A DNA stretch of 64,000 bases from Macrostomum lignano. Taxonomy: Eukaryota. How positions within the stretch are numbered: position 1 is the stretch's first letter; every line of letters starts with the position of its first letter. The notes below the pieces were generated by a model, which did no database searches, had not been told where the DNA came from, and saw only the letters and a program-made list of their open reading frames with translations. Where the stretch lies: NCBI GenBank assembly GCA_002269645.1, contig NIVC01002796.1, forward strand, positions 31 to 64,030. The letters are read 5' to 3'. The position numbers and the translations under genes are program-made. Positions 3,715 to 41,400 of the stretch are shown here, piece by piece.

Positions 3715-3905
3715 GGTTGAAGAGGCTATATGAAAGATAGCCTAGCAGAGAGCCAGCTTGAGTTTTGCTCTCTCAAAGCTGAATTGTGCTCAAGAGCCAA
3801 AAAAACAATACGTATATAGCTCGTGGAAAACTGACAGGCCAGAAGTCAAGAAGCCAAGCCTTGTATTCATATAACTTTTGCCCTCTAGCTCAAACTCAGT
3901 CTGAA

Positions 3906-6063
3906 ATGCTCCAACGAAGCCAGCTTACTGAGCTGGCAGCCCTGTGGACTGTGTGCGCCATCATCCTGTCGGCAGGCAGGCTGACAGACGGGCAGGTTCT
4001 CAACTCCGCGGTGCTGTGCAAGGCGGACCGATGCTACAACATCAGCATTCTTGGAAACGGTGACTACTTGAGTAGCTATTGCGCCAGCTTCGGGATGCAG
4101 AAGCTCGACCAGATATCGTTTGAACTGTTCACTGCTAACATAGCAGCACTGACTAGGTGAGCCCTACTGAATCTGTTCACTGCTAACATAGCAGCTCTGA
4201 CTAGGTGAGCCCTACTGAATCTGTTCACTGCTAACATAGCAGCTCTGACTAGGTGAGCCCTACTGAATCTGTTCACTGCTAACATAGCAGCACTGACTAG
4301 GTGAGCCCTACTGAATCTGTTCACTGCTAACATAGCAGCACTGACTAGGTGAGCCCTACTGAATCTGTTCACTGCTAACATAGCAGCTCTGACTAGGTGA
4401 GCCCTACTGAATCTGTTCACTGCTAACATAGCAGCTCTGACTAGGTGAGCCCTACTGAATCTGTTCACTGCTAACATAGCAGCACTGACTAGGTGAGCCC
4501 TACTGAATCTGTTCACTGCTAACATAGCAGCTCTGACTAGGTGAGCCCTACTGAATCTGTAGCACTGACTAGACGACCCCAACCAGCCTTAACCTGCAGA
4601 ATAGAGGGACTGGCGTGAAGCATTGCGGACCGTAGCTTGTAGGCCTAGTCCATCTCATAATTCACTGGAATGCTAAACTGGAATGCCTCGGATGACGGAT
4701 GACGGGCAGCCAGAAAGCTCATAGTTGGAAATAGAAAATCAATAATTATCGTGAGTTTTCTGTTGACGATTCGTCCCTACGAGAAACGACGATCGTAAAA
4801 AGAGCTCGTACGAGCTACATCCTTACCTGACTTTCCAGTGGCGTCAGTGAGACGACGTACTGGACTGGCGTCCACAGGGCCGCTCGCACCAGCCCGGCAG
4901 ACAGGGTGTTCGCCTGGCGCAGCCAGACCAGCCAGCTGTACGTCTCCAGCACCGACGTGAGCCCGTCTAGCGAAGTCTTCACCAGCACGGAGGAAGACCC
5001 AACAGTGGGTGTGATCACGGACACCACAATCAACGTGACTAATTGGAACTCGATAAAAGTAGATAACAGCGGCTACGCCATCTGCATGTGCGTGTGTCCG
5101 ATATCCAACCTGACCTGCTGCCCAGCACCGGCTTCTGGCTACACCTGCGCCAACTCGAGCGACGGTCGCTCCTTTTGCTTTCGACGTGGCGACTCCAAAA
5201 AGAAGTACTGGGAGGCGCCGACCATGTGCAGCCTGGCCAGCGGAGAGACGCTGATTGATCTGACTGAGACCGCTGCTCGAGTGGCCTTTCATGCGTACGT
5301 TTCACTGTACACAGTCTCTGGTTCTTTTTCCCTTTATGGATAATAATAATTAGAAAAACCCCTTTCCAGTGTTTTCAACACCTTCAAGGCCGGTTGTCAT
5401 GACACCTGCCTGATGGCTTTCGAGGAGCTGCCGTACAGGTTCAACGATAGCTATGGGCCGAAACTGCTTGCGGAAGGTTTCCCTTTGAAGGAGGGATACT
5501 TGAAGCAGAAAACAGACGATGCCAGGTACGGAATTACCATTGAAAAAGACTCTGGCACAGGAGGAATCAGGTACCTGGAAGAGAGGGACACCAGCGGGGG
5601 TTCTGGCCAGTTTGTATGCACTGCCACACCTGTAGAAACGACTACAACTACTACAACTACTACGCCGACTACCACAACTACATCAACTACCACAACAACT
5701 ACGCCGACTACCACAACAACTGCATCGACTACCACAACAACTGCATCGACTACCACAACAACTACTACGCCGACTACCACAACAACTACACCGACTACCA
5801 CAACTACTACGCCGACTACCACTACAATTGCGCCGAGTACTACAACCACACCTACTATCCCCACCCCGATAGCATCGACTGCTACCAAGCAGGCTTCAGC
5901 TGTCACTCCGCTGTCAGAGGAGCAAGTCGTGGCCATTAACATTCAAAACTACGAGAATTCAAAAGAGAAGGCGACATTCTATTTGGTCCCTGTTGTGTTT
6001 CTGGTTCTGGCAGTGCTGATTACTTATTACTTTGGGCGACTTGCTTATCAAATGGGCGTCTAA
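3906..6063 (+). CDS. Type I membrane protein, copy 1: signal peptide, two C-type-lectin-like domains, Thr-rich mucin stalk, TM helix, ~8-aa tail (466 aa)
   Basis: Exons 3906-4156, 4839-5294, 5370-6063, joined by phase-2 GT-AG introns with the frame continuous. CTLD-like hallmarks: CY...YC..GM..L, YWTG..R...FAW, YAIC; CP..GY.C...CF...KKYWEA..MC...G..L, QFVC. TM segment FYLVPVVFLVLAVLITYYF. Confidence 0.8.
4125..4572 (+). repeat. 48-bp tandem array made of the exon-1 end plus the splice donor of CTLD-mucin copy 1
   Basis: Unit CTGTTCACTGCTAACATAGCAGC(A/T)CTGACTAG|GTGAGCCCTACTGAAT; 9 AG|GTGAG sites at 48-bp spacing from 4157 to 4541. Confidence 0.97.
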
Positions 6064-7087
6064 CGTTTCCGAGCAAAAAAATAACACAAAAGCTGTTTCT
6101 TATGAAGAAGCGTTTTAGATATGTATTGTCTGTCATTGAATGAATCATTGGTAGTGAATGTTGTGCGCAAATTTCTCACATCTTGACGCTCGTACGCGAT
6201 ATGTTTACTAAGATAACATCATGCAAAGTTGATGGAGGGATGCTGGAAGTTCCGAAGTTCTGAAATCGAAAATGCTTTTGAGTTTTTACTCAATCTAGTG
6301 AACTCTTTTTCTAGTTTAGTTTTTCAAGCCTTTTTTCCCGTTTTACAGTTAAAAAATTCAGAACAATATTCTTGTATCAAGATTCGAGTTTTGAAAAACA
6401 TTATTGAAATAATAAACATTAATACACATTTATTACAATATACGGGAGCATGATCCCAAATTCTGACAGAGCTATGATCCCCTGTGCAGATAATCAAAAG
6501 GAGTTACTTCTGAGGTTTTTTTAAGCTATCTCATACTGATTCTGTGAAGGCGATGAGCTGACTAAAAATTTCCACTCATAGCACACTACTGAAAGTATAC
6601 AGACGCCAGTAAAATATAAAAACAACACATAGAGCAGGCAAAAAAACTGGTAAAATTGTGCTTCAACAACACTGGACCACGTGAAGGGAGACACAAAAGT
6701 GCAACTGCTTAGCAGATTGCATCACCTGACTGCAGCAACCCGTGCTCAGAATATTTTAGTAACCATTGCCACATAGGTGAGTTCCTGTAACACGGTCAGG
6801 TCTGGCTTTCCAGCTTACAGAAGGCTGAGCTGAAGGGGTGCCGGCAACAAACAATAAGCGAGACATGGCAAGCAAGACTTTTGAGAAAGACACCAAGGAT
6901 CGATAATTGGTCTCTGAGGGAGACACCAGCAGTAGGGCGAAAACAGACAAGAAAAGCTCTCAGCTGCCTTCTGAGTTGAGGGCTGCAGATGACTTTTAAA
7001 GTCAACCAACTCCCTGCTGAGGAGGTTAAAACAATTCAGAAACTCTTGGCGCTGCTCACAGCTGCCTCTGAGACGGAGTAGTCTGAA

Positions 7088-9039
7088 ATGCTCCAACGAA
7101 GCCAGCTTACTGAGCTGGCAGCCCTGTGGACTGTGTGCGCCATCATCCTGTCGGCAGGCAGGCTGACAGACGGGCAGGTCCTCAGCTCCGCGGTGCTGTG
7201 CAAGGCGGACCGATGCTACAACATCAGCATTCTGGGAGACGCAGACTTCGTGGGCACCTACTGTTCTAGTTATGGAATGCAGAATTTGGACCAACCATCG
7301 TTTGAACTCTTCTTCGAAAATACCGCAACTCTGACCAGGTGAGCAGGACTGGAACTTGTAAATAGTTAGCTAATTAGCGCAGCTGACAGCAACTCGTTTG
7401 GGCTGAAATCAAGAGCCATCAGTGAGCTGTCAGTGAGCTAACTTTCTCCGAAACTTTCCGCGCCGCAGCGGCGTCAGCGCGTCAAGATACTGGACTGGCG
7501 CCCGCATGGCCGCCCGCACAAGCCCGGCAGACAGGGTGTTCGCCTGGCGCAGCCAGACCAGTCAGCTGTACGTCTCCAGCACCGACGTGAGCCCGTCTAG
7601 CGAAGTCTTCACCAGCACGGAGGAAGACCCAACAGTCGGTGTCATCACGGACACCACAGTTGACGTGACTAATTGGAACTCTAGAGAAATAAATGACGAT
7701 GGCTACGCCATCTGCATGTGCGTGTGTCCGATATCCAACCTGACCTGCTGCCCAGCACCGGCTTCTGGCTACACCTGCACCAACTCGAGCGACGGCCGCT
7801 CCTTCTGCTTTCGACGTGGCGACTCCAAAAAGGATTTCTGGGAGGCGCCGACCATGTGCAGCCTGGCCAGCGGAGAGACGCTGATTGATCTGACTGAGAC
7901 CGCTGCTCGGGTGGCCTTTCAAAGGTGAGCTGTGTCGCTTATTTGACTGCTCGAACTGCTTGATATTTATATACATACGAGGCGCATGTAGGTGTATGCT
8001 ACTCTCGTATTCCAGCGTGTTCAACTCCTTCAAGACCCGCTGTCAGTACGATTTCTGCCTTATGGCATACGAGGTAATGCAGTACAGGTTCAATGACAGC
8101 TATGGCGCCAACCTGAGAGCTGACGGATTCGCTTTGAATGACGGATATCTAAGAGAGAAAACAACCGATTTCCAGAGAGTGATTGTCGTTGAAAAAGGTA
8201 GTCCTCAGTATCTAAAAGAGCAGGGCAGTTCCAGTTCATCTCAGTTTGTGTGCACTCTTCTGGTCAACATTACTGACACAACTGCGCCGACCACCACAAC
8301 TGCGCCGACCACCACAACTGCGCCGACCACCACAACTGCGCCGACCACCACAACTGCGCCGACCACCACAACTGCGCCGACCACCACAACTGCGCCGACC
8401 ACCACAACTGCGCCGACCACCACAACAACTGAGCCGACCACCACAACTGCGCCGACCACCACAACAACTGAGCCGACCACCACAACTGCGCCGACCACCA
8501 CAACAACTGAGCCGACCACCACAACTGCGCCGACCACCACAACTGCGCCGACCACCACAACTGCGCCGACCACCACAACTGCGCCGACCACCACAACTGC
8601 GCCGACCACCACAACTGCGCCGACCACCACAACTGCGCCGACCACCACAACTGCGCCGACCACCACAACAACTGAGCCGACCACCACAACTGCGCCGACC
8701 ACCACAACTGCGCCGACCACAACAACTGCGCCGACCACCACAACTGCGCCGACCACAACAACTGCGCCGACCACCACAACTATGCCAACCACCACAACCA
8801 CACCCCCCAAAACAATGTCGCCCACCACCACGTCGCCTGCAGCAGCCTCTGAAACGAGCCAGGCGCCCATCACCGCAGTTTCTCCCCTATCTGAGGAGCA
8901 ACTCATCGCCATCAACACGCAGAACTATGAGAATTCTAAGAAGCAGGCCATTTTCTATTTAGTTCCCTTGGCCTTCGTGGTCCTGGCTGCTCTGATAACT
9001 TACTACTTTGGCAGACTGGCGTTCCGAATGGGACTTTGA
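7088..9039 (+). CDS. CTLD-CTLD-mucin-TM protein, copy 2 (576 aa)
   Basis: Exons 7088-7338, 7469-7924, 8016-9039. Exons 1 and 2 have the same lengths (251, 456) and intron phases as copy 1. The stalk is an 18-bp (PTTTTA)n array. Confidence 0.82.
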
Positions 9040-10756
9040 TTGCTTTGAGAGTCGGCTGCACCCACAATTTGGCCGGAAGATTTGGAAATTTCTGTTTAAT
9101 GCATCGGCACCCGAGTCAAACTGAAACTGGAATTCTGAACTGGGAAGAAAAGAACTGTTTGTTTTTCGTCTAAATAATGTTAGAATTGAAACTATAGACC
9201 TCGATTTCTTTGAACTACTGATTAAAAAAGTTTCTTTCCAACTGTTTGACACGGAAACTAAAAGTAAAACATCGGGTCTTTGGAATTTGTCTCTTTAATG
9301 CATCGTTAAAAGACTTCTTTGTCTCGTCTTTGCCTTTTTAAAACCTGTTTTAAAACTGAAGAGATGTCAGGCTGCGAAAAATTCTATCGGAGTCAATTAT
9401 CTGCTCATAGTAGTATGAATTGCTTTTTTCTGAGTGATTATTGTCATTGTCAAACAGCAGAATCAGCTAATACTTCTATCTTTTACTATCTTTCTTGACG
9501 AGGGAGAGAGAGACTATAATTCAAGAACTCAATAGAAATCAACTGATCAGTAACGGCCGGCAATGACTCACCTCTCGATAATAAAATAACAAAGACTTCA
9601 ACAAAGGCTTACTGATTCGTATACACTTCTCTCGGAGATGTAGTCTCGTTTTGATTCTAGTTCTGGATAAATCTCAAGTTCTCATGAGGCTGCTCCGAGT
9701 CGGACCTCGAGCCGACCTTGGGCTCAACAGGTTTTTTATGAGGTTACAAAAGGAATTTTATAGTTTAATTGAGGATGGGCTTTTTTAATAGAAAGGTTGA
9801 GATTTGGGTCAATTTCAGGTTAACATTTACCATACCATATTTGGAAGCTCTAAAATTAGATGTTGAGAGCCGGTCTTTCGCACAATAGGATGGTCATTCA
9901 CTGTTTTCGTGATGATACTAGTAAAAGTGAAGCTTTACGAGTTCTTCTTCTAGTTCTTTACAAGTTCTTCTTTCAAGAAGATTTTTCATAAATTAAAGTG
10001 TTCAATATTCTCTTTCTAGCAGCGGTCTTTCTCTCTTCTCGGCTTTTTACAGACAGCTCAGGCTGGCCTACATGTGTCAGTTTGCACACAACAGACAGCA
10101 GAGTTTTGCGCCAGCTTTTGCTAAAGTTATCATAAGTTCGGTTTGGTTGAAACGATTTTCACAAATTTGCTTTTCAATCTAAAGCTGAACAAAGTTTTGC
10201 AGTATCTGAGCAACGATTCACAGCATCCTGAGTTGTTAGATATTGTTGACAAAAGTGTTAACATTTTCGATTTAGACATAAAAACTTTCAAAGAATCGCA
10301 AATTTGATGTAAGATGCATGCCAACAAAGCTGCTTATGATTACGAACTAGAAACCACTTGGTAGCTGATGCGTTAGTTGTATCATATTTAAGAACTGCGT
10401 GGGTGGAACTCTTGAAAGTTCCAGCAAATTTTGCTTGTCACCCCATACAGTGGAAGGCAAAACGTAGGCGGCCCGTGGCGTCACGGTTGGAGGGGGGGGG
10501 GGAGGTGGAACGGCTGCGGCACTGGGAACTGCAAAGAAGATTAAGAATCTAGAATTTTGTGGAATTTTCCCTGAGCGATGCAGGAGGGGGCGAGGCAAGA
10601 AAAGTGCGGACTGCGCATCCAACGACAATGGAACGCGAATACAATGGGTTGGCTTGGCGCTAGAGTTGGCTTTAAATTCGTGAAATTCCCAACCAAGGAA
10701 CAATACAGAAACTTTAGACGCTGCTCACAACTGCCTCTGTGTCAGAGTAGTCTGAA

Positions 10757-12975
10757 ATGCTACAACGAAGCCAGCTTACTGAGCTGGCAGCCCTGTGGGC
10801 TGTGTGCGCCATCATCCTGTCGGCAGGCAGGCTGACAGACGGGCAGGTCCTCAGCTCCGCGGTGCTGTGCAAGGCGGACCGATGCTACAACATCAGCATT
10901 CTGGGTGACGATGCCTATGTGGGCACCTACTGCTCGAGCTTCGGGATGCAGAATTTGGATCAGCCATCGTTTGAACTGTTCTACGATAATTTTACAACAT
11001 TGACCAGGTGAGTACAAACGACGCTGGGAAACGAAAAGTCACGAAGTCAGTTTAGAGCAGAGAAGTTGGGAAAGTCCACCAGAGAAGAGTGTCTCGCCCT
11101 AAAGGACTACGAAAATATTTGTTGCTTGCACCATGCTCAAACAATATACACAACACATAGACAAGTGAAAATTATTGCTAAAAACACCATATTAAATTAA
11201 TCGATTTGGTCGACTAACTCAAGAAATGATTTCCCTTCGATTGCTGCTCGAGTTGTTCGTGCGTTTACGACGCAATTTGGTTTCGAACTGCATCTTAAAT
11301 AAAAAACTCACCTTTTGCCTTGGACTCTGATCGATGTTCGATATCAGACATCACTTGCCCACTTACCGTTACACTAAATTTCTAAGATCTATCTGCTTGT
11401 TTGTAGATATTTAACGTTTGCCCAATTTTGATTGCGTTTTTGCCAAAACATTTGTCTCCTACGAGCTAATTAACTGTCTGGAAAGACGTTAGTTAAATTA
11501 ACCCATGCTGCACACTCACACACAAAAGTTTAAAAAATAACTTCTCAGCTCATCGACATAGTTTTTATTACTCCATCCGCAGCGGCATCAGCGCGTCAAG
11601 GTACTGGATCGGAGCCAGTATGGCCGCCCGCACCAGCCCGGCAGACAGGGTGTTCGCCTGGCGCAGCCAGACCAGCCAGCTGTACGTCTCCAGCACCGAC
11701 GTGAGCCCGTCGAGCGAAGTCTTCACCAGCACAGAGGCCAACCCAACAGTGGGTGTGATCACGGACACCACAGTCAACGTGACTAATTGGAACTCTAGAG
11801 AAATAAATGACGATGGCTACGCCATCTGCATGTGCGTGTGTCCGATATCCAACCTGACCTGCTGCCCAGCACCGGCTTCTGGCTACACCTGCGCCAACTC
11901 GAGCGACGGCCGCTCCTTTTGCTTTCGACGTGGCGGCTATTCTATGAAGTTCTGGGAGGCGCCGACCATGTGCAGCCTGGCCAGCGGAGAGACGCTGATT
12001 GATCTGACTGAGACCGCTGCTCGATCAGCTTTCAGTTCGTGAGTTGTCCTGACTGTCTGAATCTGATTTAACACTCGGATAAGTGCCGATATTGAATATT
12101 TCCTCATTTATTGATATTCCAGCGTGTTCAACTCCATCAAAAGCGGATGTTCTGACGGTTGCCTGATGGCATACGAAGAACCACCGTACAGGTTGAACAA
12201 CACCCATGGACCGAAGTTACGCGCGACAGGATTGCCTCTATATGACAAATATTTCAAGCAGAAAGTAACATAGTCAAACTACGGAATCGTCATTGAGCAC
12301 AGCACCAGAGAGTTGAAGGAGCAAGTCTTCTCTCCTCATTCGGCACAGTTTATCTGTTGCATTCCCCTAAGATATCTCGCGACTAGCACAACTACACCCA
12401 CCACCACAACTACACCCACCAGCACAACTACACCCACCAGCACAACTACAACTACCAGCACAACTACACCCACCACCACAACTACACCCACCACCACAAC
12501 TACACCCACCACCACAACTACACCCACCACCACAACTACACCCACCACCACAACTACACCCACCACCACGACTACACCCACCACCACAACTACTTTAACT
12601 ACCACAGCTACTTCAACTACTACAGCTACTCCAACTACTACAGCTACTCCAACTACTACAGCTACTCCAACTACCACAGCTACTCCAACTACCACAGCTA
12701 CTCCAACTACCACAGCTACTCCAACTACCACAACTACTCCAACTACCACAAGTACGCCGACCACCACGTCGCCAGCAGCAGCCTCTGAAACGACCCAGGC
12801 GCCCATCACCGCAGTTTCTCCCCTATCTGAGGAGCAACTCATCGCCATCAACACGCAGAACTATGAGAATTCTAAGAAGCAGGCCATTTTCTATTTAGTT
12901 CCCTTGGCCTTCGTGGTCCTGGCTGCTCTGATAACTTACTACTTTGGCAGACTGGCGTTCCGAATGGGACTTTGA
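10757..12975 (+). pseudogene. CTLD-CTLD-mucin-TM protein, copy 3, with an in-frame premature TAG
   Basis: Exons 10757-11007, 11583-12038, 12123-12975. TAG at 12271-12273 (YFKQKVT*SNYGI vs YLKQKTDDARYGI in copy 1). The frame stays open and homologous downstream to TGA at 12975. Confidence 0.72.
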
Positions 12976-13554
12976 TTGCTTTGAGAGTCGGCTGCACTCA
13001 CAATTTGGCCGGAAGATTTGGAAATTTCTGTTTAATGCATCGGCACCCAAGTCAAAATATTTGTGAAGGGGAAAGGAACAAAGTTGTTTTCATCCTAATT
13101 GATATAACAACTATAACGTCTGGATAATAAACAAATTAAACAAAAGTCTCTCAACGTCTAAATTATTCACTTTCTAGAAGAGAATAATTCGCACGCGCAA
13201 AAAATCTTAATGACAGCAAGTAGTCCACTAGAAGTAGTATAACGTGCGTTTTACAAAGTACAACTTTTTGTCACTAAAAAACTTTGGTTACTCCGATTAT
13301 AACTTTTTACTGCATATCAACAAAGTAAAAAAGGCTGCTTGGCTACCTGACCAGAGAATATCCGTGACTGCCGATGCACGACTTCTGATTTACGAGCTAC
13401 TTTCATCGTTTCTTGCATAAATTTGACAAGATTTTCATTATTTTCTACTGGAATTGCACATGCGTGTACTATGACCCAACGAAATCGGAATTGCTGCTCC
13501 ATAAGAGATCCATATAGCCTAGAGCGGATTGTAAGTCGCTTTGCTCCGTCATTC

Positions 13555-15177
13555 AATCCAAGGACTACTCAAGGACTACTCAATGACTACTCAAGGACTG
13601 ACTACTCAAGGACTGACTACTCAAGGACTGACTACTCAAGGACTGACTACTCAAGGACTGACTACTCAAGGACTGACTACTCAAGGACTACTCAAGGACT
13701 ACTCAAGGACTGACTACTCAAGGACTGACTACTCAAGGACTACTCAAGGACTACTCAAGGACTACTCAATGACTACTCAAGGACTACTCAAGGACTACTC
13801 AAGGACTACTCAATGACTACTCAAGGACTACTCAAGGACTACTCAATGACTACTCAAGGACTACTCAATGACTACTCAAGGACTGACTACTCAAGGACTG
13901 ACTACTCAAGGACTACTCAAGGACTACTCAAGGACTACTCAAGGACTACTCAATGACTACTCAAGAACTACTCAAGGACTACTCAATGACTACTCAAGGA
14001 CTACTCAATGAATACTCAAGGACTACTCAAGGACTACTCAATGACTACTCAAGGACTACTCAATGACTACTCAGGGACTGACTACTCAAGGACTGACTAC
14101 TCAAGGACTGACTACTCAAGGAATACTCAAGGACTACTCAAGGACTACTCCTCAAGAACTACTCAAGGACTACTCAATGACTACTCAAGGACTACTCAAT
14201 GAATACTCAAGGACTACTCAAGGACTACTCAATGACTACTCAAGGACTACTCAAGGACTACTCAAGGACTGACTACTCAAGGACTGACTACTCAAGGACT
14301 ACTCAAGGACTACTCAATGACTACTCAATGACTACTCAAGGACTACTCAAGGACTGACTACTCAAGGACTGACTACTCAAGGACTGACTACTCAAGGACT
14401 GACTACTCAAGGACTACTCAAGGACTGACTACTCAAGGACTGACTACTCAAGGACTACTCAAGGACTACTCAAGGACTACTCAAGGACTACTCAAGGACT
14501 ACTCAAGGACTACTCAAGGACTACTCAATGACTACTCAATGACTACTCAATGACTACTCAATGACTACTCAAGGACTGACTACTCAAGGACTACTCAAGG
14601 ACTACTCAAGGACTACTCAAGGACTACTCAATGACTACTCAATGACTACTCAATGACTACTCAAGGACTGACTACTCAAGGACTACTCAAGGACTACTCA
14701 AGGACTACTCAAGGACTACTCAAGGACTACTCAAGGACTACTCAAGGACTACTCAAGGACTACTCAAGGACTACTCAAGGACTACTCAAGGACTACTCAA
14801 GGACTACTCAAGGACTACTCAAGGACTACTCAAGGACTACTCAAGGACTACTCAAGGACTACTCAATGACTACTCAATGACTACTCAAGGACTGACTACT
14901 CAAGGACTACTCAAGGACTACTCAAGGACTACTCAAGGACTACTCAATGACTACTCAATGACTACTCAAGGACTGACTACTCAAGGACTACTCAAGGACT
15001 ACTCAAGGACTACTCAAGGACTACTCAAGGACTACTCAAGGACTACTCAAGGACTACTCAAGGACTACTCAAGGACTACTCAATGACTACTCAATGACTA
15101 CTCAAGGACTGACTACTCAAGGACTACTCAAGGACTACTCAAGGACTACTCAAGGAATACTCAAGGACTACTCGAGT
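13555..15177. repeat. 1.6-kb satellite of interspersed 11-bp (GACTACTCAAG / GACTACTCAAT) and 15-bp (GACTGACTACTCAAG) units
   Basis: Seen directly. Confidence 0.98.
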
Positions 15178-15678: not shown

Positions 15679-18600
15679 TTAATCGTCCCTGCCGCCGGTG
15701 CCTCGCAGCTCCTCAATCCTGGCGCCCTCCAGTGCAGCGCGCAGCTCCTCCAGTCGGGTGAGCAGTGCGAAGCCCTCCTGGCTGAACTCATCCTCCTCCA
15801 GCTGCCAGCGGGTGCAGCTCAGCCGGTTGCGCAGTTTTCTCAGTGTGACCGACTGGTAGTACAGGTAGAACAGGTGCACAAAGTTCCTGGTATTCTGCGC
15901 CAGCACGTCTAGCATTGTGCGGCGTCGAGGCGCCAGACCGATGAGGCGCCGTAGCAGAGAGACCAGCAGCCAGGCCGCCAGGTTGCGGCCCTCCAACAGC
16001 AGGTTGAGCGGTGCCGGCAGCGGGGAGCGCTTGGTGAACTCCCGGCTGAGGTCGTAGCGCTCAAATAGCCAGAGCGACTTGGACTCGGAGTCGACCATAT
16101 CGACGGTCTTGCTGAACATGGCCACGATGACGTTCAGGAGCAGCACCTGCACGATCACGATGTACGCTGCCATGAGACCGTACGGCACCAGCACATTGCC
16201 AGGGAAGCCGACGCACTTCTCTGCAATCATTGACTCCGTTGCCAGCTGGGTGGACACGTTGGCGCTTGTTGGAGCGTCGCACTCTTTCTTCAGGTCGTCC
16301 AGGCCGTACTCGCCTGCTCAGTAGCAATAAGTTCGAGACAGTAGCGATAGGTTGAGCATCATAAATTCATAAGAGATAGCCCACTGAGGGGGGGGGGGTA
16401 GTGCGTCGGCTAAAGTACATTGGTTCGATTCAGCGCGTGACCGCATTAATTTGGGGCTCAATGTACGTACACTTGGTGAGTCACGATGAGAAATTCAAGT
16501 GCCGCTGTGCTCCCTGTGTGAGCGTGTGTATGAGTTTATGAGTCTGCTTTTAGTTATTCATGCTTATATACTTGTAAATTGTCTCTTGACGTGCTAGGGG
16601 GCTGTAGCCTAGTGGTCAGAGCGTCGGACTCACGACTTGAAGGTCGGGGGTTCGATTCTCAACTCACTCGGAATAATTTATATCCATGAGCAAGACACTT
16701 AACTCTGCATTGCTTCAGTTCACCCAGCTGTAAAATGGGTGCCAGCATTAGCTGGGGTAATTGAGGGTGTGTGTGGCGACCCCCCAGTCCTTGGACTGAA
16801 CAGCCGTACGCAGCCTTCAGATGCGCCGCGCAATAGCTGCGGCTGAGCTGTCGGTTGCGCATCTCTTTCATCTGATTTACTCACCAACAATAGTATAAAA
16901 GGTCCTGTGAAACATTTCCACAAGAATCTCCGCTGTTGGAATCTCGTTGATGCGGCCCTGGCTGTAGAACTTTGCATTTGGCCACAGGAGGGCGTGGAAA
17001 GTGGTTCCGAATCCCACCATGATCACCACAAGGATGTACAGAAACGGGATGAAGTCCTTTCTGACGATGAGAGACAGCATCTTCAGCTTGACGCCGACAG
17101 ACTCGAGCACCACTGAGATGTAGAGGATGCGAATCCAGAAGATCAGCGTGGTGATGACTATCAGTACGTAGCTGACGTCGCCCCAGCCTTTGCCGTGCTC
17201 GCTGAGCATGCCGCCGAGCACCAGCAGATGTTGCGAATCCATCTGTCTGGCTGCAAAGGCCAGGAAGCCGCAGAGGATTGCAACCAGGTCCATGGCATTC
17301 CAGCCGTCAGTCAGGTAGACCGCCAGTGTCTCCTGGCGCCAAGCGGAGACCACCTCGCGCAGCTCCTCGACTAGAACGCCAAGCAGGGTCAGGTAGCAGA
17401 ACACCTCTGTGGGGCTGGCGTCTCCCTGAAAATGAAAAAGGGCACTCCGCGTTGTAAGGGTTGGGAGACTGCCGATTAGCGCCAGTGATCTTTAATCTCT
17501 TCCTGTTTAAACTTTAGATCCTCCAAATTAATTAGTAAATATTTTGTATCCTTCGATTGACTGCATTTTTTGGACAGGGGTCTAAAGTCGGAGCTGGAGC
17601 TGAATTAACCTCGTATTTCAAAGCACAGCTTTGGCCACTTGCTCCGCCCTCCATTGTGTCCTCTCGCACTTTTTTATATTTTCTCCTCTCTGCTCTCCTC
17701 TCTCTTCTCTCTCCCCCATCTCCTCTCTGCTCTCTCTTCTCTCTCCCCCCATCTCCTCTCTGCTCTCTCTTCTCTCTCTCCCCCATCTCCTCTCTGCTCT
17801 CTCTTCTCTCTCCCCCATCTCCTCTCTGCTCTCTCTTCTCTCTCTCCCCCATCTCCTCTCTGCTCTCTCTTCTCTCTCTCTCCCATCTCCTCTCTGCTCT
17901 TCTCTCTCTCCCCGATCTTCTCTCTGCTCTCTCTTCTCTCTCTCCCCCATCTCCTCTCTGCTCTCTCTTCTCTCTCCCCCATCTCCTCTCTGCTCTCTCT
18001 TCTCTCTCCCCCATCTCCTCTCTGCTCTCTCTTCTCTCTCTCCCCCATCTCCTCTCTGCTCTCTCTTCTCTCTCTCCCCCATCTTCTCTCTGCTCTCTCT
18101 TCTCTCTCTCCCCCATCTCCTCTCTGCTCTCTCTTCTCTCTCCCCCATCTCCTCTCTGCTCTCTCTTCTCTCTCCCCCCTTCTTCTCTCTGCTCTCTCTT
18201 CTCTCTCCCCCATCTCCTCTCTGCTCTCTCTTCTCTCTCTCCCCCATCTCCTCTCTGCTCTCTCTTCTCTCTCTCCCCCATCTCCTCTCTGCTCTTCTCT
18301 CTCCCCCATCTCCTCTCTGCTCTCTCTTCTCTCTCTCCCCCATCTCCTCTCTGAACTTCTCTCTCTCCCCCATCTCCTCTCTGCTCTTCTCTCTCCCCCA
18401 TCTCCTCTCTGAACTTCTCTCTCTCCCCCATCTCCTCTCTGCTCTTCTCTCTCCCCCATCTCCTCTCTGCTCTCTCTTCTCTCTCCCCCCATCTCCTCTC
18501 TGCTCTCTCTTCTCTCTCTCTCCCATCTCCTCTCTGCTCTTCTCTCTCTCCCCGATCTTCTCTCTGCTCTCTCTTCTCTCTCTCCCCCATCTCCTCTCTG

Positions 18601-21600
18601 CTCTCTCTTCTCTCTCTCCCCCATCTCCTCTCTGCTCTTCTCTCTCTCCCCCATCTCCTCTCTGCTCTCTCTTCTCTCCCCCCATCTCCTCTCTGCTCTC
18701 TCTTCTCTCTCTCTCCCATCTCCTCTCTGCTCTTCTCTCTCCCCCCATCTCCTCTCTGCTCTCTCTTCTCTCTCTCCCCCATCTCCTCTCTGCTCTTCTC
18801 TCTCTCCCCGATCTTCTCTCTGCTCTCTCTTCTCTCTCTCCCCCATCTCCTCTCTGCTCTTCTCTCTCTCCCCCATCTTCTCTCTGCTCTTCTCTCTCTC
18901 CCCCATCTTCTCTCTGCTCTCTCTTCTCTCTCTCCCCATCTCCTCTCTGCTCTTCTCTCTCTCCCCCATCTTCTCTCTGCTCTCTCTTCTCTCTCTCTCC
19001 CATCTCCTCTCTGCTCTTCTCTCTCTCCCCCATCTCCTCTCTGCTCTTCTCTCTCTCCCCCATCTCCTCTCTGCTCTTCTCTCTCTTCTCTCTCTCCCCC
19101 ATCTCCTCTCTGCTCTGCTCTCTCTTCTCTCTCCCCCCACCTCTTCACTAATATTTTATCATCTCTCCTCGCTCCTCCCTTTCCCATCTCCTTTTTTCTG
19201 TCTCCTTCCTCTTATCTTTTGTTCGTCTTCCTTTCTTCCCTCCTCGTCTGCAGTACCAAATCTATAGAATTAACCATTTTTTATTAGAGGCAGGGTAGCT
19301 GTGTACTGGCGCACCCTGGCGCACTTTAAGTGGCATTGTCACACAACCGGCGAGAGGCATTGCTGTGTAGCAGTTCTTTGTAGCAGCTTGGTTATCCATT
19401 TATCGTTGTACTTTTTCTCTTCGTTGTTTACCCCTTCTGTGGACCTCAACCACAGACAATGAAAGTTAAACAATACTGTACGCTGCGTATTAAGTTACAC
19501 CTCTAAGATTTATCAAGACAAAAAGTATACTCGCCCCTGAGCACAGTGAGCAGGCACACAAGCGCGCGGATACGTACGCAGTCATACGCACAGGCACACA
19601 CTCACACAGGAGTGTACAGCGCTCCCAGCGTTATTTATCGTTAGGCATGTACACTTTACTGTGCATTGGGGGTCGGCCCTCAAGACAGGCCGAGATTCCA
19701 ATTTAGCCCCCAAATGAATATGACTGCACTTGGAATCGAGCCTGGGCCGCTGGAACATGGGAGCGCCGCGCTAGACTGCTGGACTGCGGCCCCTCCAATT
19801 AAATCAATTAAAATGTCCTGCAGCAATGAACTGGATATCCATCTGGCCCTGAAGGTATAAAAGATTGCCGATCCATGATTCTGGACGAGAAACAGTGCTG
19901 ATTTCCCACTTCCCAGTTTCATTCCTCATCGATTGCTCCCTTCCCAGAGCCGCTGGTCACCTGAAAGTCGTGCAGTATCACGTAGGACAGCAGGCCGATG
20001 AACACAAACGAGGCCGCCGCGTGCAAGCGAAACTTGACGCACGGCGTGTTGTAAAACAGCGCCAGCTCGCTGCCGAACTCGCTCGCTCGCTGCCACAGGC
20101 GGCGACTGCGCGCTTCCAGTTCAGAGTCCTGTCGTCGGCGTCGGCGTCTGGCCACCTGGAAATCCGAGGCGAGCAGACGGAACGTCTCCGGACAGTTGCC
20201 CGGATGTTCGGTTGGTCCGGAATCGTTGAGCACCGAGTCGAGGAAGGCGCGCGTGCCAGGACCGCGGAACCGGCGCAGCAGGCCGGGCAGGAAGAGCAGC
20301 AGCGGTGGAACGAACCCGGCCGCAATCACCAGCTCGCGCAGGGCAGGCTTGCGGAAGTTGAAAAAGTCCCCATACCAGTTCTTCTCCGTTGCCAGTTCAA
20401 CAATGTCCAGCTTGATGAAACTGCCCGCCCCGCCTCGAGCAGACAGGTCAAGAATCGTGTAGTTAGCGTAGTTGGGCAGAGGCATACTCACGTAGCTGAT
20501 GGTGAGGCAGTTGCCGGGTGAATCGTCAACCTCCTTCACCTGCTTGATCACTTTGACGGCCATCGCCTCGCAGATGTCGGCGATGCGACCGGCCCGGTCA
20601 GCGAACACGTCCTCGATGTCGCGTCGACGTGCCAGTGAGCGGAGCAGCGTTGCGGCGAGCAAGGCTAGCGGCACCAGGTCGAACTCCTCCTGCTGCAGCA
20701 AGATCGGCACCAGGCCCGGCCGGCCGCTCAGGATCGCCCACAGCACCAGCGACTGGGCGGGGTCTCGGAGCGGCCGCTTCTGGCACCAGTCGTCGCCGCC
20801 GCGTCGCTCTCCAAAGTCGAACACCATCTGGCGGCTGGCGAACTGCCAGTAAGTGGTGAGCTCGGCCAGCAGCTTGTTGAGCCTTGCAAACGAGATCGAA
20901 GTGCCGCCGTCGATGCAGCACCGCTGCTGGAGCAGCTCGCGCACGCCTGCCTTCTGCTTGCGCAACGTCTTGGCATACAATTTGTCGATGGCAACCTCCA
21001 GTTGGCGGGAGAGCGCTCTCCAGAGGTGCCGATGTTCAACCAGCCGCTTCAGCAGGCGCGTGTTCTCGGCAAACAGCACCAGCTGGCACAGCTGCCAGGT
21101 GATCCGACTCAGCAGGCCGCTGGACTCGAGGCTGCAGCTCAATCCGGCCTGGAAGGCGGCGATCAGAGCATCAATGAGCTGCTTGGCGTCCACGGTGCGA
21201 CGGGAGGCAGCCAGCTCAAGCCTGGACAGCTGCCATTGCCGCTGCTTCACCGCCTCTTCATCTTCTTCGGCTTCCAAGCCCTCCGGGTCCAAGTCCTTTG
21301 CTTCAGCTCTCTTTGACTGTCCATCAATGTCGCTGTCAATGAGCAGCAACTGGCGCACGAACTCGCGACCTTCAAAAGAGGCGAACACCCCGATTATGTC
21401 CTGGCCGTTATTGAACTGTCGAAGGCGGCGCATCAGGTGCCTGCCGAGGCAGTCGATGCCGGATGTGTCCGGGCCCTGCAGCAGCAAATCGACCGGCGTC
21501 TGGCCGCGACTATCAGCCAGAGAGAAGTCGGCACCGTGACAGAGCAGCTGGCCAAGCAGCTCATGATTCTCACACGAGGCGGCAATATGCAGGCCAGTGC

Positions 21601-22108
21601 TGCCGCTGCTATTCCGACTGTTGACAATGGAAGGCTTTGCCCGCAACAGGAGGTCGGCGATGCGGCCACACTCGGCGTAGCAGGCCACGTGCAGCGCGTT
21701 GTCGCCGATGGCGTCGAGCTGAGTCGGATCGGCGCCGCACCGGAGCAGCTCGCGGGCGACGCCTTTGCTGCGCTCGCCCGCCGCTGCAGCCAGGTGGAGC
21801 GGCCGGTCGCCTGCCGAGTTTGGCCGGTCCGCATTGGCGCCGAACGTCAGCAGCAGCTCGGCGCACTCGGTCAGACCGGCAGCGGCGCACGCGTGCAGCG
21901 CCGAGTCTCCGCGGTCATCTGGCGCTTCAATGGCGCCAGCGCCGGCAATGTCAACCAACTGCAGCAGCACTTGGCGCAGCTTGTCGGGCTGGTTGTCTCG
22001 CACAGCGTCGTGCAGCTGCGCCGCCAGCTCGCCGCTGGGGTCGCTCGCGGCGGCCTCTTGGGAGCCGGCGGCGTTACTGGAGTCTCCAGACGGTGGCGAC
22101 TCAGACAT
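15679..22108 (-). CDS. TRPM-family-like cation channel with N-terminal ankyrin repeats (~1107 aa)
   Basis: Coding exons 22108-19961, 17425-16885, 16313-15679, with consistent phases 0 and 1. Ankyrin repeats: GDSALH, GDRPLH, GDNALH, GSTGLH. TRPM MHR4-like LVLWAILSGR...LVPLALLAATLLRSLA; pre-S1 FYNTPCVKF; S1-S6; pore TFYTIVGEYG; TRP helix LLNVIVAMFSKT...WLFERY...PLPAPLNLL. An acceptor at 22153 implies an upstream exon, probably UTR. Confidence 0.88.
16597..16865 (+). mobile_element. tRNA-derived SINE with CORE-like central domain, copy 1
   Basis: A box TAGCCTAGTGG and B box GGTTCGATTC. GAGCAAGACACTTAACTCTGC...CAGTTCACCCAGCTGTAAAATGGG resembles the MIR/CORE block. Near-identical to the copies at 57456 and 62526; the 3' end is shorter. 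Confidence 0.82.
17684..19145. repeat. CT-rich polypyrimidine minisatellite (~28-32-bp variable unit CTCTCTTCTCTCTCCCCCATCTCCTCTCTG)
   Basis: Seen directly; source of the spurious 250-550-aa ORFs. Confidence 0.97.
19533..19623 (-). mobile_element. Short dispersed element (GCTGTACAC..CTGTGTGAG.GTGTG...GCGCTTG...TGCTCAGG family)
   Basis: The reverse complement aligns by eye with 59706-59789, 42867-42945, 61735-61813 and 16504-16547. Confidence 0.6.
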
Positions 22109-22467
22109 TGCAGGCCTAGCTGAGGCGGGCAGCAGTGCGCCAACGGCTTTCGCTTGCAAAATAGAGAGAGAGAGAGAGACCAGGTAATCTTGAGTGTCAG
22201 TCTGCTGTCTGCCTGTATGCAGCGGAGAATTCAACCGGATCCGACGGCCGCTAATGCTGGTCCTCCCCCGAGGCCCTGCGAATCAAAAGCCAGGCTTCGT
22301 TAGGCACCGAAAAATCTCCCAGCTAAAAAATACCTGCACAAGTCCCTCTCTCACCTTTCCCTTGGTTGCTAACCTGGACCAGGTGGCACAAATGAACCTA
22401 TTGAACCTGCAAACTTTGGGATTGCCTTCCTCTGACTGAGCAGACATAGAAAGTTGAGTTATTCCTG

Positions 22468-26312: not shown

Positions 26313-28325
26313 TCACATCCAGCCAGAGAAGGCGGCTGAGTTCGGTGCTGGCGACTCGCCAAGTTGCTCGTTGCTTCTGACCTTCTTCAGCGAGGCCAGC
26401 TGCTCGGCTGTTGGCCAGTCAGCGGTCGCGCCGGCGGCTCCGGCGGGGGTGATGGGGCTGACGGGCGTGTCGGCGGAGTAGCGGCGCTGCTCGGCGAGGC
26501 CGCCGAAGAAAAGGGCGCTGTTCCACAGGCGCTTCGGCCGCTCCTGCTCCGGCCAGAGCCGGCGGGCGTCCTTCAGGGTCTGCTGCTGCTGGGGCTCGTT
26601 TAGCAGTGACATCTGGGCGATCCCAATGCAGGCGTCAGCTCCGACATCGTCGCTGCTAGCAGCGGCGGCGGGTCCGGCAGCCGGGGTGACGCTGACAGTC
26701 GGGGCGGCCGACTCAGCTTTGGTCTGGCGCACCTGATGAAAATCGGCCACCAGTTTGAGGGCCTCGACGGAGCGGGGCAAGCTGGGCTCGAGCCACAGGC
26801 CTGGGCAGCGCATGGCAACGTACTCGGAGATGAGCTGCTTGGCAAACTGGACCCGTTCCTTGGTGCCGCAGATGGTGAAGCAGGTGCGCAGGCCGGGCTG
26901 CTTCTCCTGCTTGCGCGGCGTGGCGATGTGCGTGTCTGAGAGCTGCTGCACCCAGCGGATGGTCTGGCCAGAGGCGCCCACAATGAGGCCGACCTTGTCC
27001 TGCTCAACATACAGTCGCTCCTCCACTCTAGTGGGTTCAGTGCGAGTCTGACGTTCCTGCTGCACCCGGGTAAAGTGCTCACTCATCTGCTGCAGAATTC
27101 GGATCGCCTGCAAACAATTGATTGTGGGCTATTTGTTGAATGACTTAAGCACAATTTAGTGGTTCTTGTATTTTTGGCAATGTGCCAAGTTTTATATGCT
27201 CAATATGCATTAGTTGGAAAATTAAAAATTAAGCAACAGTGACTCACCTCAGCAACTTTATCTGGCACTCCAGTGACTTCAAAGATAGGCAGCTCATCTC
27301 TTGTTGGTGTCTTGACCCAAACCTTCAAGTGTTCACGGATCTGCTTGATGCGGAGGCCTGGAATAAGTAAAAAATAAGTTAAAATTAGCTAAATAAAAAA
27401 ATAAATGAACCAGTAATTAGAAAGAAAATAAGTTTTAAATATTAAAATTCAAAATAGGCCTATTCTAATCTAAAAAAACTTATATAAAATATACTTAAAT
27501 AAAAGAAGCTTATTTTAAATTTAAAGATTACAAATCAAGACAATATGCTAAATAAATTACTAAATAAGAAATTTTCAAACTAAAATATTTGGAAGCAACA
27601 ATTAATTCTCAAAGAGGAATTTTTTACACTTTACCTACATTAATTGAAAATTAATAAAAAACAAAATTATTTAGATTAGATGATATGCCATTTCTCATGA
27701 TGATTGATGTTAAGAAAAATATACAAACACACTTACCATTCTTGCCAACAATTTCAGCCACATGATCAGATGATGGAACTTGAATGCGCTCAGTAATTGT
27801 TATCTGTCGCTTGCCCTGAGCAATCGAAGCTTGCATTATTAGTCTTTGGAACAAATCGCGGGACCTATTCTCAAAGGTGGCCTGTCGCAGGTGGTTGTCA
27901 AAATCGGCACTGGCTGTCATTTGTTCAATGGCAGAAGTTCCAGCAGCTGATGAAGTCGCTGACTGGGTAGCAGAACTTGACAAATGATCCAAACTTTGAA
28001 GACTAAAATTTGCATCACCAAATGCTTCTGTACCTTCTGTTCTTGTCGCAAGTCCACAGCCAAGAATCGGCCTCCATGACGCACTGTCGCTCAATTCCGA
28101 TCCACGAATACCGCTAGCTTGAGTAGTCTTCTGGTTTGCAAGCAAATTTAGCAGGGACTCTGGGTCCAACTCTCCCATCTTCGGTAGTTCGACGTGTTCG
28201 AGAGTGGGAAGAACACGAGAAAGAAAATCAGACAGAGAGCTTTCTTCCGTTTTCGGGTTTCTATCCACAACAGAGTCGCTTTTAAAGTCACGACGTGATG
28301 AGTACTCGACGTCAACGTTCGACAT
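26313..28325 (-). CDS. mex3: MEX-3 family RNA-binding protein (2 KH domains, no RING; 497 aa)
   Basis: Exons 28325-27737, 27357-27248, 27107-26313 with consistent phases. IQVPSSDHVAEIVGKNGLRIKQIREHLKVWVKTPTRDELPIFEVTG matches MEX3 [46 protein letters not shown]. KH2 reads VGLIVGASGQTIRWVQQLSDTHIATP. Confidence 0.92.
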
Positions 28326-30160: not shown

Positions 30161-30233
30161 TGTCCAAGATGGGATTCGAACCCATAACCTTCAGCTCCGA
30201 AAACCGACGCCTTATCCATTAGAACACTTGGAA
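30161..30233 (-). tRNA. tRNA-Arg(TCG), degenerate; possible pseudogene
   Basis: 73 nt. D loop AATGGATA, anticodon loop TTTCGGA, perfect T arm ATGGG-TTCGAAT-CCCAT. There is a U1:C72 mismatch and a D-stem mismatch. Confidence 0.7.
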
Positions 30234-31681: not shown

Positions 31682-38867
<7,186 letters not shown>

Positions 38868-40143: not shown

Positions 40144-41400
40144 TTCCGCTACCGCTTCCGCTACCGCTTCCGCTACCGCTTCCGCTACCGCTTCCGCTAC
40201 CGCTTCCGCTACCGCTTCCGCTACCGCTTCCGCTACCGCTTCCGCTACCGCTTCCGCTACCGCTTCCGCTACCGCTTCCGCTACCGCTTCCGCTACCGCT
40301 TCCGCTACCGCTTCCGCTACCGCTTCCGCTACCGCTTCCGCTACCGCTTCCGCTACCGCTTCCGCTACCGCTTCCGCTACCGCTTCCGCTACCGCTTCCG
40401 CTACCGCTTCCGCTACCGCTTCCGCTACCGCTTCCGCTACCGCTTCCGCTACCGCTTCCGCTACCGCTTCCGCTACCGCTTCCGCTACCGCTTCCGCTAC
40501 CGCTTCCGCTACCGCTTCCGCTACCGCTTCCGCTACCGCTTCCGCTACCGCTTCCGCTACCGCTTCCGCTACCGCTTCCGCTACCGCTTCCGCTACCGCT
40601 TCCGCTACCGCTTCCGCTACCGCTTCCGCTACCGCTTCCGCTACCGCTTCCGCTACCGCTTCCGCTACCGCTTCCGCTACCGCTTCCGCTACCGCTTCCG
40701 CTACCGCTTCCGCTACCGCTTCCGCTACCGCTTCCGCTACCGCTTCCGCTACCGCTTCCGCTACCGCTTCCGCTACCGCTTCCGCTACCGCTTCCGCTAC
40801 CGCTTCCGCTACCGCTTCCGCTACCGCTTCCGCTACCGCTTCCGCTACCGCTTCCGCTACCGCTTCCGCTACCGCTTCCGCTACCGCTTCCGCTACCGCT
40901 TCCGCTACCGCTTCCGCTACCGCTTCCGCTACCGCTTCCGCTACCGCTTCCGCTACCGCTTCCGCTACCGCTTCCGCTACCGCTTCCGCTACCGCTTCCG
41001 CTACCGCTTCCGCTACCGCTTCCGCTACCGCTTCCGCTACCGCTTCCGCTACCGCTTCCGCTACCGCTTCCGCTACCGCTTCCGCTACCGCTTCCGCTAC
41101 CGCTTCCGCTACCGCTTCCGCTACCGCTTCCGCTACCGCTTCCGCTACCGCTTCCGCTACCGCTTCCGCTACCGCTTCCGCTACCGCTTCCGCTACCGCT
41201 TCCGCTACCGCTTCCGCTACCGCTTCCGCTACCGCTTCCGCTACCGCTTCCGCTACCGCTTCCGCTACCGCTTCCGCTACCGCTTCCGCTACCGCTTCCG
41301 CTACCGCTTCCGCTACCGCTTCCGCTACCGCTTCCGCTACCGCTTCCGCTACCGCTTCCGCTACCGCTTCCGCTACCGCTTCCGCTACCGCTCCGCTACG
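40144..41400. repeat. Perfect 12-bp repeat (CCGCTACCGCTT)n, ~104 units
   Basis: Seen directly; gives the spurious poly-(PL) ORF. Confidence 0.99.

Follow-up and report, generated by a model that had tools for sequence, protein, structure and literature searches.

Patchwork divergence among three tandem genes for putative mucin-like membrane glycoproteins in Macrostomum lignano and the probable part of interlocus gene conversion

How can three neighbouring genes be nearly identical in one part of their exons and saturated at synonymous sites in another? This question is raised by a locus of the free-living flatworm Macrostomum lignano, which we studied in a 64-kb stretch of contig NIVC01002796.1 (64,000 nucleotides, hereafter the window) from one assembly. 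Three tandem paralogs, g1, g2 and g3, lie there on the plus strand at 3906-6063, 7088-9039 and 10757-12975, and a preliminary description of the same DNA had read them as variable lectin-like receptors. Our analysis makes interlocus gene conversion the probable source of the patchwork, with old duplicates whose exon interiors were repeatedly homogenised while other segments diverged.

The gene models were built by reading the sequence with canonical GT-AG splice sites. Each copy has three coding exons, on the plus strand as are all features of the locus given below: 3906-4156, 4839-5294 and 5370-6063 in g1 (466 residues), 7088-7338, 7469-7924 and 8016-9039 in g2 (576 residues) and 10757-11007, 11583-12038 and 12123-12975 in g3 (519 codons). 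The first two coding exons measure 251 and 456 nt in every copy, both introns are in phase 2 and every splice site is GT-AG. The first introns are 682, 130 and 575 nt long and the second introns 75, 91 and 84 nt, in the order g1, g2, g3. A tblastn search found no fourth copy in the window. The products share a common layout of signal peptide, two Cys-containing domains, Thr/Pro repeat stalk, transmembrane (TM) helix and 9-residue tail. In g1 the first coding exon covers the signal peptide and the start of domain 1; the second completes domain 1 and adds a Cys-rich linker and the first half of domain 2; and the last holds the diverged C-terminal half of domain 2, the stalk, the TM helix, the tail and a TAA stop. 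The last exon of g2 likewise runs from the diverged half of domain 2 through stalk, TM helix and tail to a TGA stop, and that of g3 contains an in-frame TAG besides the stalk array, TM helix and tail.

DNA similarity between the copies is limited to the exons and a few adjoining bases. It ends 3-8 nt from the exon edges, and the introns and spacers are unalignable; 58 nt upstream of the first coding exon are common to g2 and g3 (7030-7087 in g2), with a sharp boundary at 7029/7030. Within the exons the divergence is bimodal. Block A (codons 1-48; 3906-4049 in g1, 7088-7231 in g2 and 10757-10900 in g3) has a synonymous divergence (dS) of 0.03-0.06. Block C (codons 99-233; 4882-5286, 7512-7916 and 11626-12030) has a dS of 0.11-0.15, or 0.08-0.13 without two short variable patches, and a non-synonymous divergence (dN) of about 0.005 without them. 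In contrast dS reaches 0.95-1.5 in block B (codons 49-98, across the intron-1 junction; dN/dS 0.12-0.24) and 1.1-4.3 in block D (codon 234 to the stalk; dN/dS 0.11-0.33), a more than 10-fold difference between blocks of the same genes. This is not merely an effect of constraint on the protein, since fourfold-degenerate sites show it too: 8.5-9.8% of them differ in A+C versus 39-50% in B+D (Fisher p = 9e-6 to 7e-4). The two patches lie at codons 156-161 (5053-5070 in g1, 7683-7700 in g2, 11797-11814 in g3), where IKVDNS stands against REINDD, and at codons 202-207 (5191-5208, 7821-7838 and 11935-11952), which read DSKKKY, DSKKDF and GYSMKF. Much of this had been seen in the preliminary description. 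The exon lengths and intron phases that it gave as shared are the same in all three gene models, and the exon alignments display the near-identical signal-peptide region and most of exon 2 as well as the variable 3' half of exon 1 and 5' part of exon 3. Its SIKVDNSGY patch is indeed variable, but the change consists of six substituted codons and not of an indel.

The segments also disagree on which copies are most closely related. Informative sites group g2 with g3 in block B (28 versus 13 and 13 for the other groupings), in codons 147-162 around the first patch (10 versus 0 and 2) and in the last 171 coding nt (52 versus 0 and 0), but g1 with g2 in codons 201-208 around the second patch (7 versus 2 and 1) and in block D (55 versus 36 and 28). 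The conflict is significant between blocks B and D (chi-square p = 0.0008) and between patch 1 and patch 2 (Fisher p = 0.00025). The G+C content at third codon positions (GC3) is 0.73-0.79 in blocks A+C versus 0.54-0.68 in B+D (Fisher p = 0.001-0.015). At the 3' end g2 and g3 share a tract of 297 nt with 4 mismatches and a 203-nt perfect stretch (8824-9120 in g2, 12760-13056 in g3) that continues about 80 nt into the 3' untranslated region and then ends abruptly. In the coding part of this tract g1 differs at 30% of positions, and in the 5' part of the same last exon the synonymous sites between g2 and g3 are saturated.

Taken together the dS blocks, the conflicting topologies, the higher GC3 and the g2/g3 3' tract argue for interlocus gene conversion among the three copies, which we consider likely. 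The duplications are old, since the introns and spacers between the copies no longer align, and the raised GC3 of the homogenised blocks is a trace expected of GC-biased conversion and fits it. At the 3' end of g2 and g3 exchange within the stalk repeats may have acted instead of conversion. Gene conversion or unequal exchange had already been proposed in the preliminary description, and the more than 10-fold dS contrast, the topology conflict, GC3 and the unalignable introns agree with that proposal. One could object that the blocks of low dS are also those of lowest dN, about 0.005, and that very strong constraint extending to synonymous sites (an RNA structure, a splicing or a regulatory element in the exons) would keep them alike with no conversion at all. 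Such constraint leaves the switch of the supported grouping between adjacent segments unexplained as well as the raised GC3, and it does not account for a near-perfect g2/g3 tract that reaches 80 nt into the 3' untranslated region and stops abruptly while g1 differs at 30% in its coding part. We regard it as extremely unlikely.

A second objection is technical. A patchwork of this kind could arise during assembly or consensus polishing if paralogs of a partly duplicated genome rich in repeats were collapsed or cross-polished, and in the M. lignano DV1 assembly duplicated non-repetitive blocks amount to 180 Mb and simple or tandem repeats to 15% (PMC5730564); the window too is full of minisatellites. 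Against such an artefact, the conserved blocks are not identical and each copy has scattered private differences. All three copies retain intact frames, splice sites and intron phases, and an independently annotated public protein model agrees with g1 at every one of the roughly 256 residues that align. It appears hardly probable to us that an artefact explains the pattern.

Several points nevertheless weigh against conversion as the explanation and against the account of the proteins given below. A Sawyer-type run test on condensed polymorphic sites was significant for g2-g3 only (p = 0.0015; 0.09 and 0.14 for the other pairs), but this test is weak when all three copies are homogenised together. 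The comparison and the selection estimates are confined to three sequences with no outgroup. The basis is one assembly, where mis-assembly or a polishing artefact may be present, and the published DV1 assembly is redundant (PMC5730564). On the protein side the AlphaFold2 models, with a mean predicted local distance difference test score of 42.5 for the whole ectodomain and 39.1 for domain 2 alone, were too poor for use, and the functional side of the account is inference throughout.

If conversion is the cause, the locus may work as follows. Exon interiors that are still alike enough, namely codons 1-48, codons 99-233 and the g2/g3 3' end, would keep being homogenised. The segments adjoining the diverged introns and the second half of domain 2 would have escaped and would now evolve separately under purifying selection. 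By established models of concerted evolution this escape would be self-reinforcing, as conversion needs sequence identity, and the stalk arrays would meanwhile expand and contract independently. Blocks of low synonymous divergence beside old diverged ones have arisen by conversion in human RHD/RHCE, the red/green opsins, the gamma-globins and KIR/Ly49. Concerted evolution of the RHD/RHCE type also produces conflicting segment topologies and raised GC3 in converted tracts, and there is no difference in principle between these cases and ours. What is special to g1-g3 is the confinement of homology to the exons: the converted tracts lie inside exons and fade towards unalignable introns. The locus is a compact natural example of conversion and escape partitioning a gene, with divergent modules that are conserved in their own right. 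From an evolutionary point of view it is a clean but ordinary instance of concerted evolution that belongs to known kinds, the mucin-like type I receptor and conversion among tandem paralogs, and it touches no long-standing open question.

What kind of protein is being partitioned in this way? The signal peptide was read from the translations as a hydrophobic N-terminus. It precedes a head region of about 290 residues with 14 cysteines. The stalk is encoded by tandem arrays whose units differ between the copies, with a 21-nt unit repeated 9.5 times in g1 (5647-5846), an 18-nt unit repeated 28.3 times in g2 (8277-8798; 28 copies of TTTTAP) and an 18-nt unit repeated 21.2 times in g3 (12387-12767). 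A juxtamembrane motif, SEEQ..AIN.QNYENSK, is kept, and a single TM helix of 19 hydrophobic residues (5977-6033 in g1, 8953-9009 in g2) leads into a cytoplasmic tail of 9 residues; the helix and tail of g3 are the same as those of g2. An N-terminal signal peptide, a Ser/Thr/Pro-rich repeat stalk, a single C-terminal TM helix and a cytoplasmic tail are the features of a mucin-like type I membrane glycoprotein, and all of them are present. We infer from the translations that the family adopts this topology and is glycosylated, presumably by O-glycosylation of the stalk. These readings agree with the surface protein with mucin-like stalk, TM helix and very short tail that had been claimed earlier (there with a tail of about 8 residues), and with the claim that stalk length and repeat unit differ between the copies.

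The two head domains had been described as a pair of C-type lectin-like domains (CTLDs), an assignment that our comparisons leave unproven. Scanned against Pfam, the ectodomains of g1 and g2 matched no family at E <= 10, neither CTLD (PF00059) nor PAN, and profiles of domains 1 and 2 run against all PDB sequences retrieved no CTLD, the best matches being unrelated at E about 2. A Foldseek search with the low-confidence ectodomain model returned meaningless Hsp90-type noise (E > 0.5). Comparison of domain 1 with domain 2 revealed no similarity that would indicate an internal duplication. A database search with the carbohydrate recognition domain of mannose-binding protein found 9 close relatives only, and the narrow profile made from it (A4) gave short local matches only. 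We also used a CTLD profile (A5) made from a nine-member alignment, which retrieves 258 PDB CTLD sequences at E <= 1e-10. Against this profile domain 1 showed a weak match (hhalign P = 0.04) that is collinear over 110 columns and has the CTLD landmarks in register: CY, C1, YWTG (W-x-G), FAWRS (F-x-W), NWNS (WN) and the final Cys. Among 200 column shuffles four reached the score and none the aligned length. Domain 2 aligned with the first 43 columns only, the beta1-alpha1-alpha2 region (P = 0.057; score reached by 3 of 200 shuffles), and its global alignment to the profile failed.

The cysteines and motifs give a similar picture. In domain 1 C59 is a candidate for C1 and C166/168 is the terminal Cys, in CTLD-like spacing, and there is no C2-C3 pair. 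Domain 2 has a C0-C0' pair (C187-C197), a C1 (C214) and a terminal QFVC (C319), and lacks WIGL, WND and a C2-C3 pair. No EPN or QPD motif occurs in either domain of any copy, and domain 1 has WNS in place of WND, so that if these are CTLDs they would be of a non-lectin kind. Domain 1 is plausibly a very divergent CTLD that does not bind sugar, and the fold of domain 2 is uncertain. Should the heads be CTLDs, few known ones would be more divergent.

One or both domains could instead have another Cys-rich extracellular fold, for example PAN/Apple, or a novel one. This alternative is serious though somewhat doubtful in our view. It would account for the empty Pfam scan at E <= 10, the absence of CTLDs among the PDB matches, the hhalign probabilities of about 1%, the unalignable part of domain 2 past its first 43 columns, the unlikeness of the two domains to each other and the missing conserved C2-C3 disulfide and EPN/QPD motif. 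It would not account for a domain 1 alignment that is collinear over 110 columns with CTLD landmarks in register, when only 4 of 200 shuffles reach its score and none its length, nor for the start of domain 2, where C-F-x8-W-E-A-x3-C-x5-G-x-L matches the CTLD beta1-alpha1 region (3 of 200 shuffles). The automatic UniRef names of the public models disagree in the same way: P0001, named 'Apple domain-containing', would favour the other fold and P0002, named 'C-type lectin domain-containing', a CTLD. Provided that the CTLD register is right, variation in domain 1 would fall on the alpha1-alpha2 scaffold side and on the patch after WN, and in domain 2 on the whole ligand-side half.

Do the variable segments then form a diversified recognition system, as the preliminary description had suggested, with roles in immunity, adhesion or gamete/allorecognition? 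In such a system positive or balancing selection would act on hypervariable patches and conversion would shuffle them between the copies. The large variable blocks speak a different language, as they are under purifying selection (dN/dS 0.11-0.33 over B and D), and the paralogs on this evidence look like stably differentiated genes and not like a rapidly diversifying set. The two short patches are more suggestive. Their changes are clustered and almost purely non-synonymous in otherwise near-identical sequence, with six consecutive non-synonymous changes at codons 156-161 of g1 and four at codons 202-205 of g3, and their ratio of non-synonymous to synonymous changes exceeds that of the remaining block C (Fisher p = 0.002-0.04). 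In the weak alignment to CTLDs patch 1 comes immediately after the WN(D)-like motif, which in true lectin CTLDs is at the ligand site. Stalk length varies between the copies as well. Even so the dN/dS of the patches, estimated from about 12 synonymous sites, is 0.77-0.96 and not above 1; there are three copies only, one of them with a stop codon, and no more family members were found among 5.8 billion proteins. The preliminary description had itself named a lack of non-synonymous excess in the variable patches as grounds for refutation, and this is largely what the estimates show. Taken with the constraint on the large blocks, these results leave the earlier suggestion unlikely. The patches may be loops under relaxed constraint, small remnants that escaped conversion, or traces of micro-conversion by donors not seen here, and positive selection on them is neither shown nor excluded.

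A narrower version would be a flatworm-specific recognition system in which the hypervariable loops at codons 156-161 and 202-207 are kept different by selection and conversion shuffles whole cassettes between the copies. We think this very unlikely. If true it would give a simultaneous hermaphrodite mosaic surface receptors for recognition of mate, sperm, self or microbe, and the stop-bearing g3 could be a silent donor.

For stably differentiated paralogs under continuing conversion a more modest function can be proposed from their architecture. The stalk would raise the head domains, taken as two disulfide-rich globular units, over the cell surface or glycocalyx. The tail of 9 residues would be too short for signalling by itself, and the proteins would act in adhesion or recognition, or via a partner. 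As the paralogs differ in stalk length and in conserved, paralog-specific halves of the head domains, distinct and fixed specificities are suggested; they would most likely bind different, individually conserved partners, or else serve as adhesion or glycocalyx components.

Several known systems resemble parts of this arrangement. The vertebrate group XIV CTLD proteins (thrombomodulin, CD93, CLEC14A and CD248/endosialin) and layilin are, in textbook accounts, type I membrane proteins whose N-terminal CTLD, not a sugar binder of the classical type, is held off the membrane by a Ser/Thr-rich mucin-like region; one TM helix leads to a short tail in the cytoplasm. Unlike these proteins g1-g3 have no EGF or sushi modules, carry two unrelated head domains and not one and have a tail of only 9 residues; no sequence homology to them was detected, and the CTLD membership of g1-g3 is itself unproven. 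DC-SIGN and L-SIGN (CD209/CLEC4M), also textbook cases, are adjacent paralogs with very similar heads on a neck encoded by a repeat of varying copy number. They differ in being type II proteins whose 69-bp neck repeat forms a coiled coil and not a Thr/Pro mucin stalk, and they are bona fide Ca-dependent lectins with the EPN motif that is absent in g1-g3. Two extracellular CTLDs in an invertebrate are known from textbooks for suREJ1, the sea-urchin sperm receptor for egg jelly, and for the dual-CTLD CLEC proteins of C. elegans. The REJ proteins act in gamete recognition and would be the closest analogue for a recognition hypothesis, but they contain REJ/PKD modules and several TM helices, and the nematode CLECs are mostly secreted. 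We detected no sequence similarity of g1-g3 to suREJ1 or the CLECs.

Judged by sequence the family is an orphan, and M. lignano is the only species in which it has been seen so far. Among 5.8 billion proteins its only relatives were the two M. lignano entries P0001 and P0002, both of them models of g1: P0001 equals g1 at 100% over the aligned part, and P0002 is the entry that matches it without a difference along some 256 aligned residues. When 1.84 billion cluster representatives were searched exhaustively with an HMMER profile, P0001 was the only one returned. The C-terminal module had no match in the protein databases, g2 and g3 are absent from the public protein sets, and no paper describing the family was found in the literature searched. 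An orphan surface-glycoprotein family is thereby documented in a flatworm model for regeneration and sexual-selection research.

Comparison with the public models also clarified the 5' end of g1. What had earlier been taken for the first exon of this gene is preceded by a non-coding exon at 2828-2921, which follows an AG acceptor and is followed by a GTATGG donor; a 33-residue N-terminal extension of P0002 corresponds to 2828-2920 at 100%. This exon is spliced to an acceptor at 3899/3900, directly before TCTGAAATG at 3900 and 6 nt before the ATG, and the similarity of g1 to the other copies begins exactly at this acceptor. We note that P0002 starts directly after another AG (tctcgcag/AGC), possibly the site where a spliced leader is added in trans, as happens to 38.8% of M. 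lignano genes (PMC5730564).

The other end of the same coding exon has an unusual donor region. A 48-bp minisatellite of 9.2 copies with 98% matches (4121-4560) extends from the last 36 nt of the first coding exon of g1 (4121-4156) into the intron. Its unit consists of these 36 nt and the first intron bases, and the donor ACTAG/GTGAGC is repeated nine times as a result; read-through or use of any downstream donor leads at once to an in-frame TGA. All three copies also have another in-phase GT (GTTTGA) that could serve as donor, 39 nt before the main one: at 4118-4119 in g1, 7300-7301 in g2 and 10969-10970 in g3. P0002 uses the GT at 4118-4119 and so is without 13 codons (FELFTANIAALTS). We kept the 251-nt exon because the similarity of the paralogs continues up to the GTGAG donor, ending 6 nt past it, and because the 13-codon segment, which preserves the frame, is conserved as protein. 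P0002 further lacks 9 residues around the first variable patch, and after YLKQK its frame is shifted. The public models of the locus contain errors or gaps: 13 codons are skipped in one, each of the two is either truncated or frame-shifted, and neither g2 nor g3 is represented.

The third copy had been presented earlier as a further receptor, and an in-frame TAG in its last exon, inside domain 2 (12271-12273), had been overlooked. The gene is otherwise intact in start codon, splice sites, frame, TM helix and tail. It may be a pseudogene of recent origin, a nonsense allele or a gene for a truncated product with no membrane anchor, and by any of these readings it would at present be disabled or truncated by the stop codon. 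A 9-nt intron that would remove the TAG, GTAACATAG, starts with GT and ends with AG and was rejected as far too short.

The neighbours of the locus are ordinary genes. Rfam and tRNA scans found nothing within the g1-g3 locus; elsewhere in the window the tRNA scan placed tRNA-Arg(TCG) at 30161-30233 and tRNA-Met(CAT) at 56496-56570, both on the minus strand. Open reading frames (ORFs) with a KH domain (26313-27113) and a RIH domain (59989-60588) are on the minus strand and one with a protein kinase domain (36099-36521) is on the plus strand. On the minus strand between 16877 and 22234 we found an ORF with ankyrin repeats that is TRPM2-like (19919-22234) and an Ion_trans ORF (16877-17404), and these two ORFs on the same strand may belong to one TRP-channel-like gene. 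Between them (17682-19137) is an array of about 45 copies of a CT-rich 34-nt repeat with extreme strand skew, and the ankyrin ORF lies in the stretch of highest G+C of the window (64% over 20001-22000). Directly downstream of g3 an 11-nt satellite, CAAGGACTACT, is present in about 137 copies (13559-15173). A 12-nt repeat, TTCCGCTACCGC, of about 105 copies with 99% matches occupies 40144-41399 and forms an open frame of 444 codons. In all about 30 distinct minisatellite arrays are scattered over the window, a crowding that agrees with the 15% of simple or tandem repeats in the published genome (PMC5730564).

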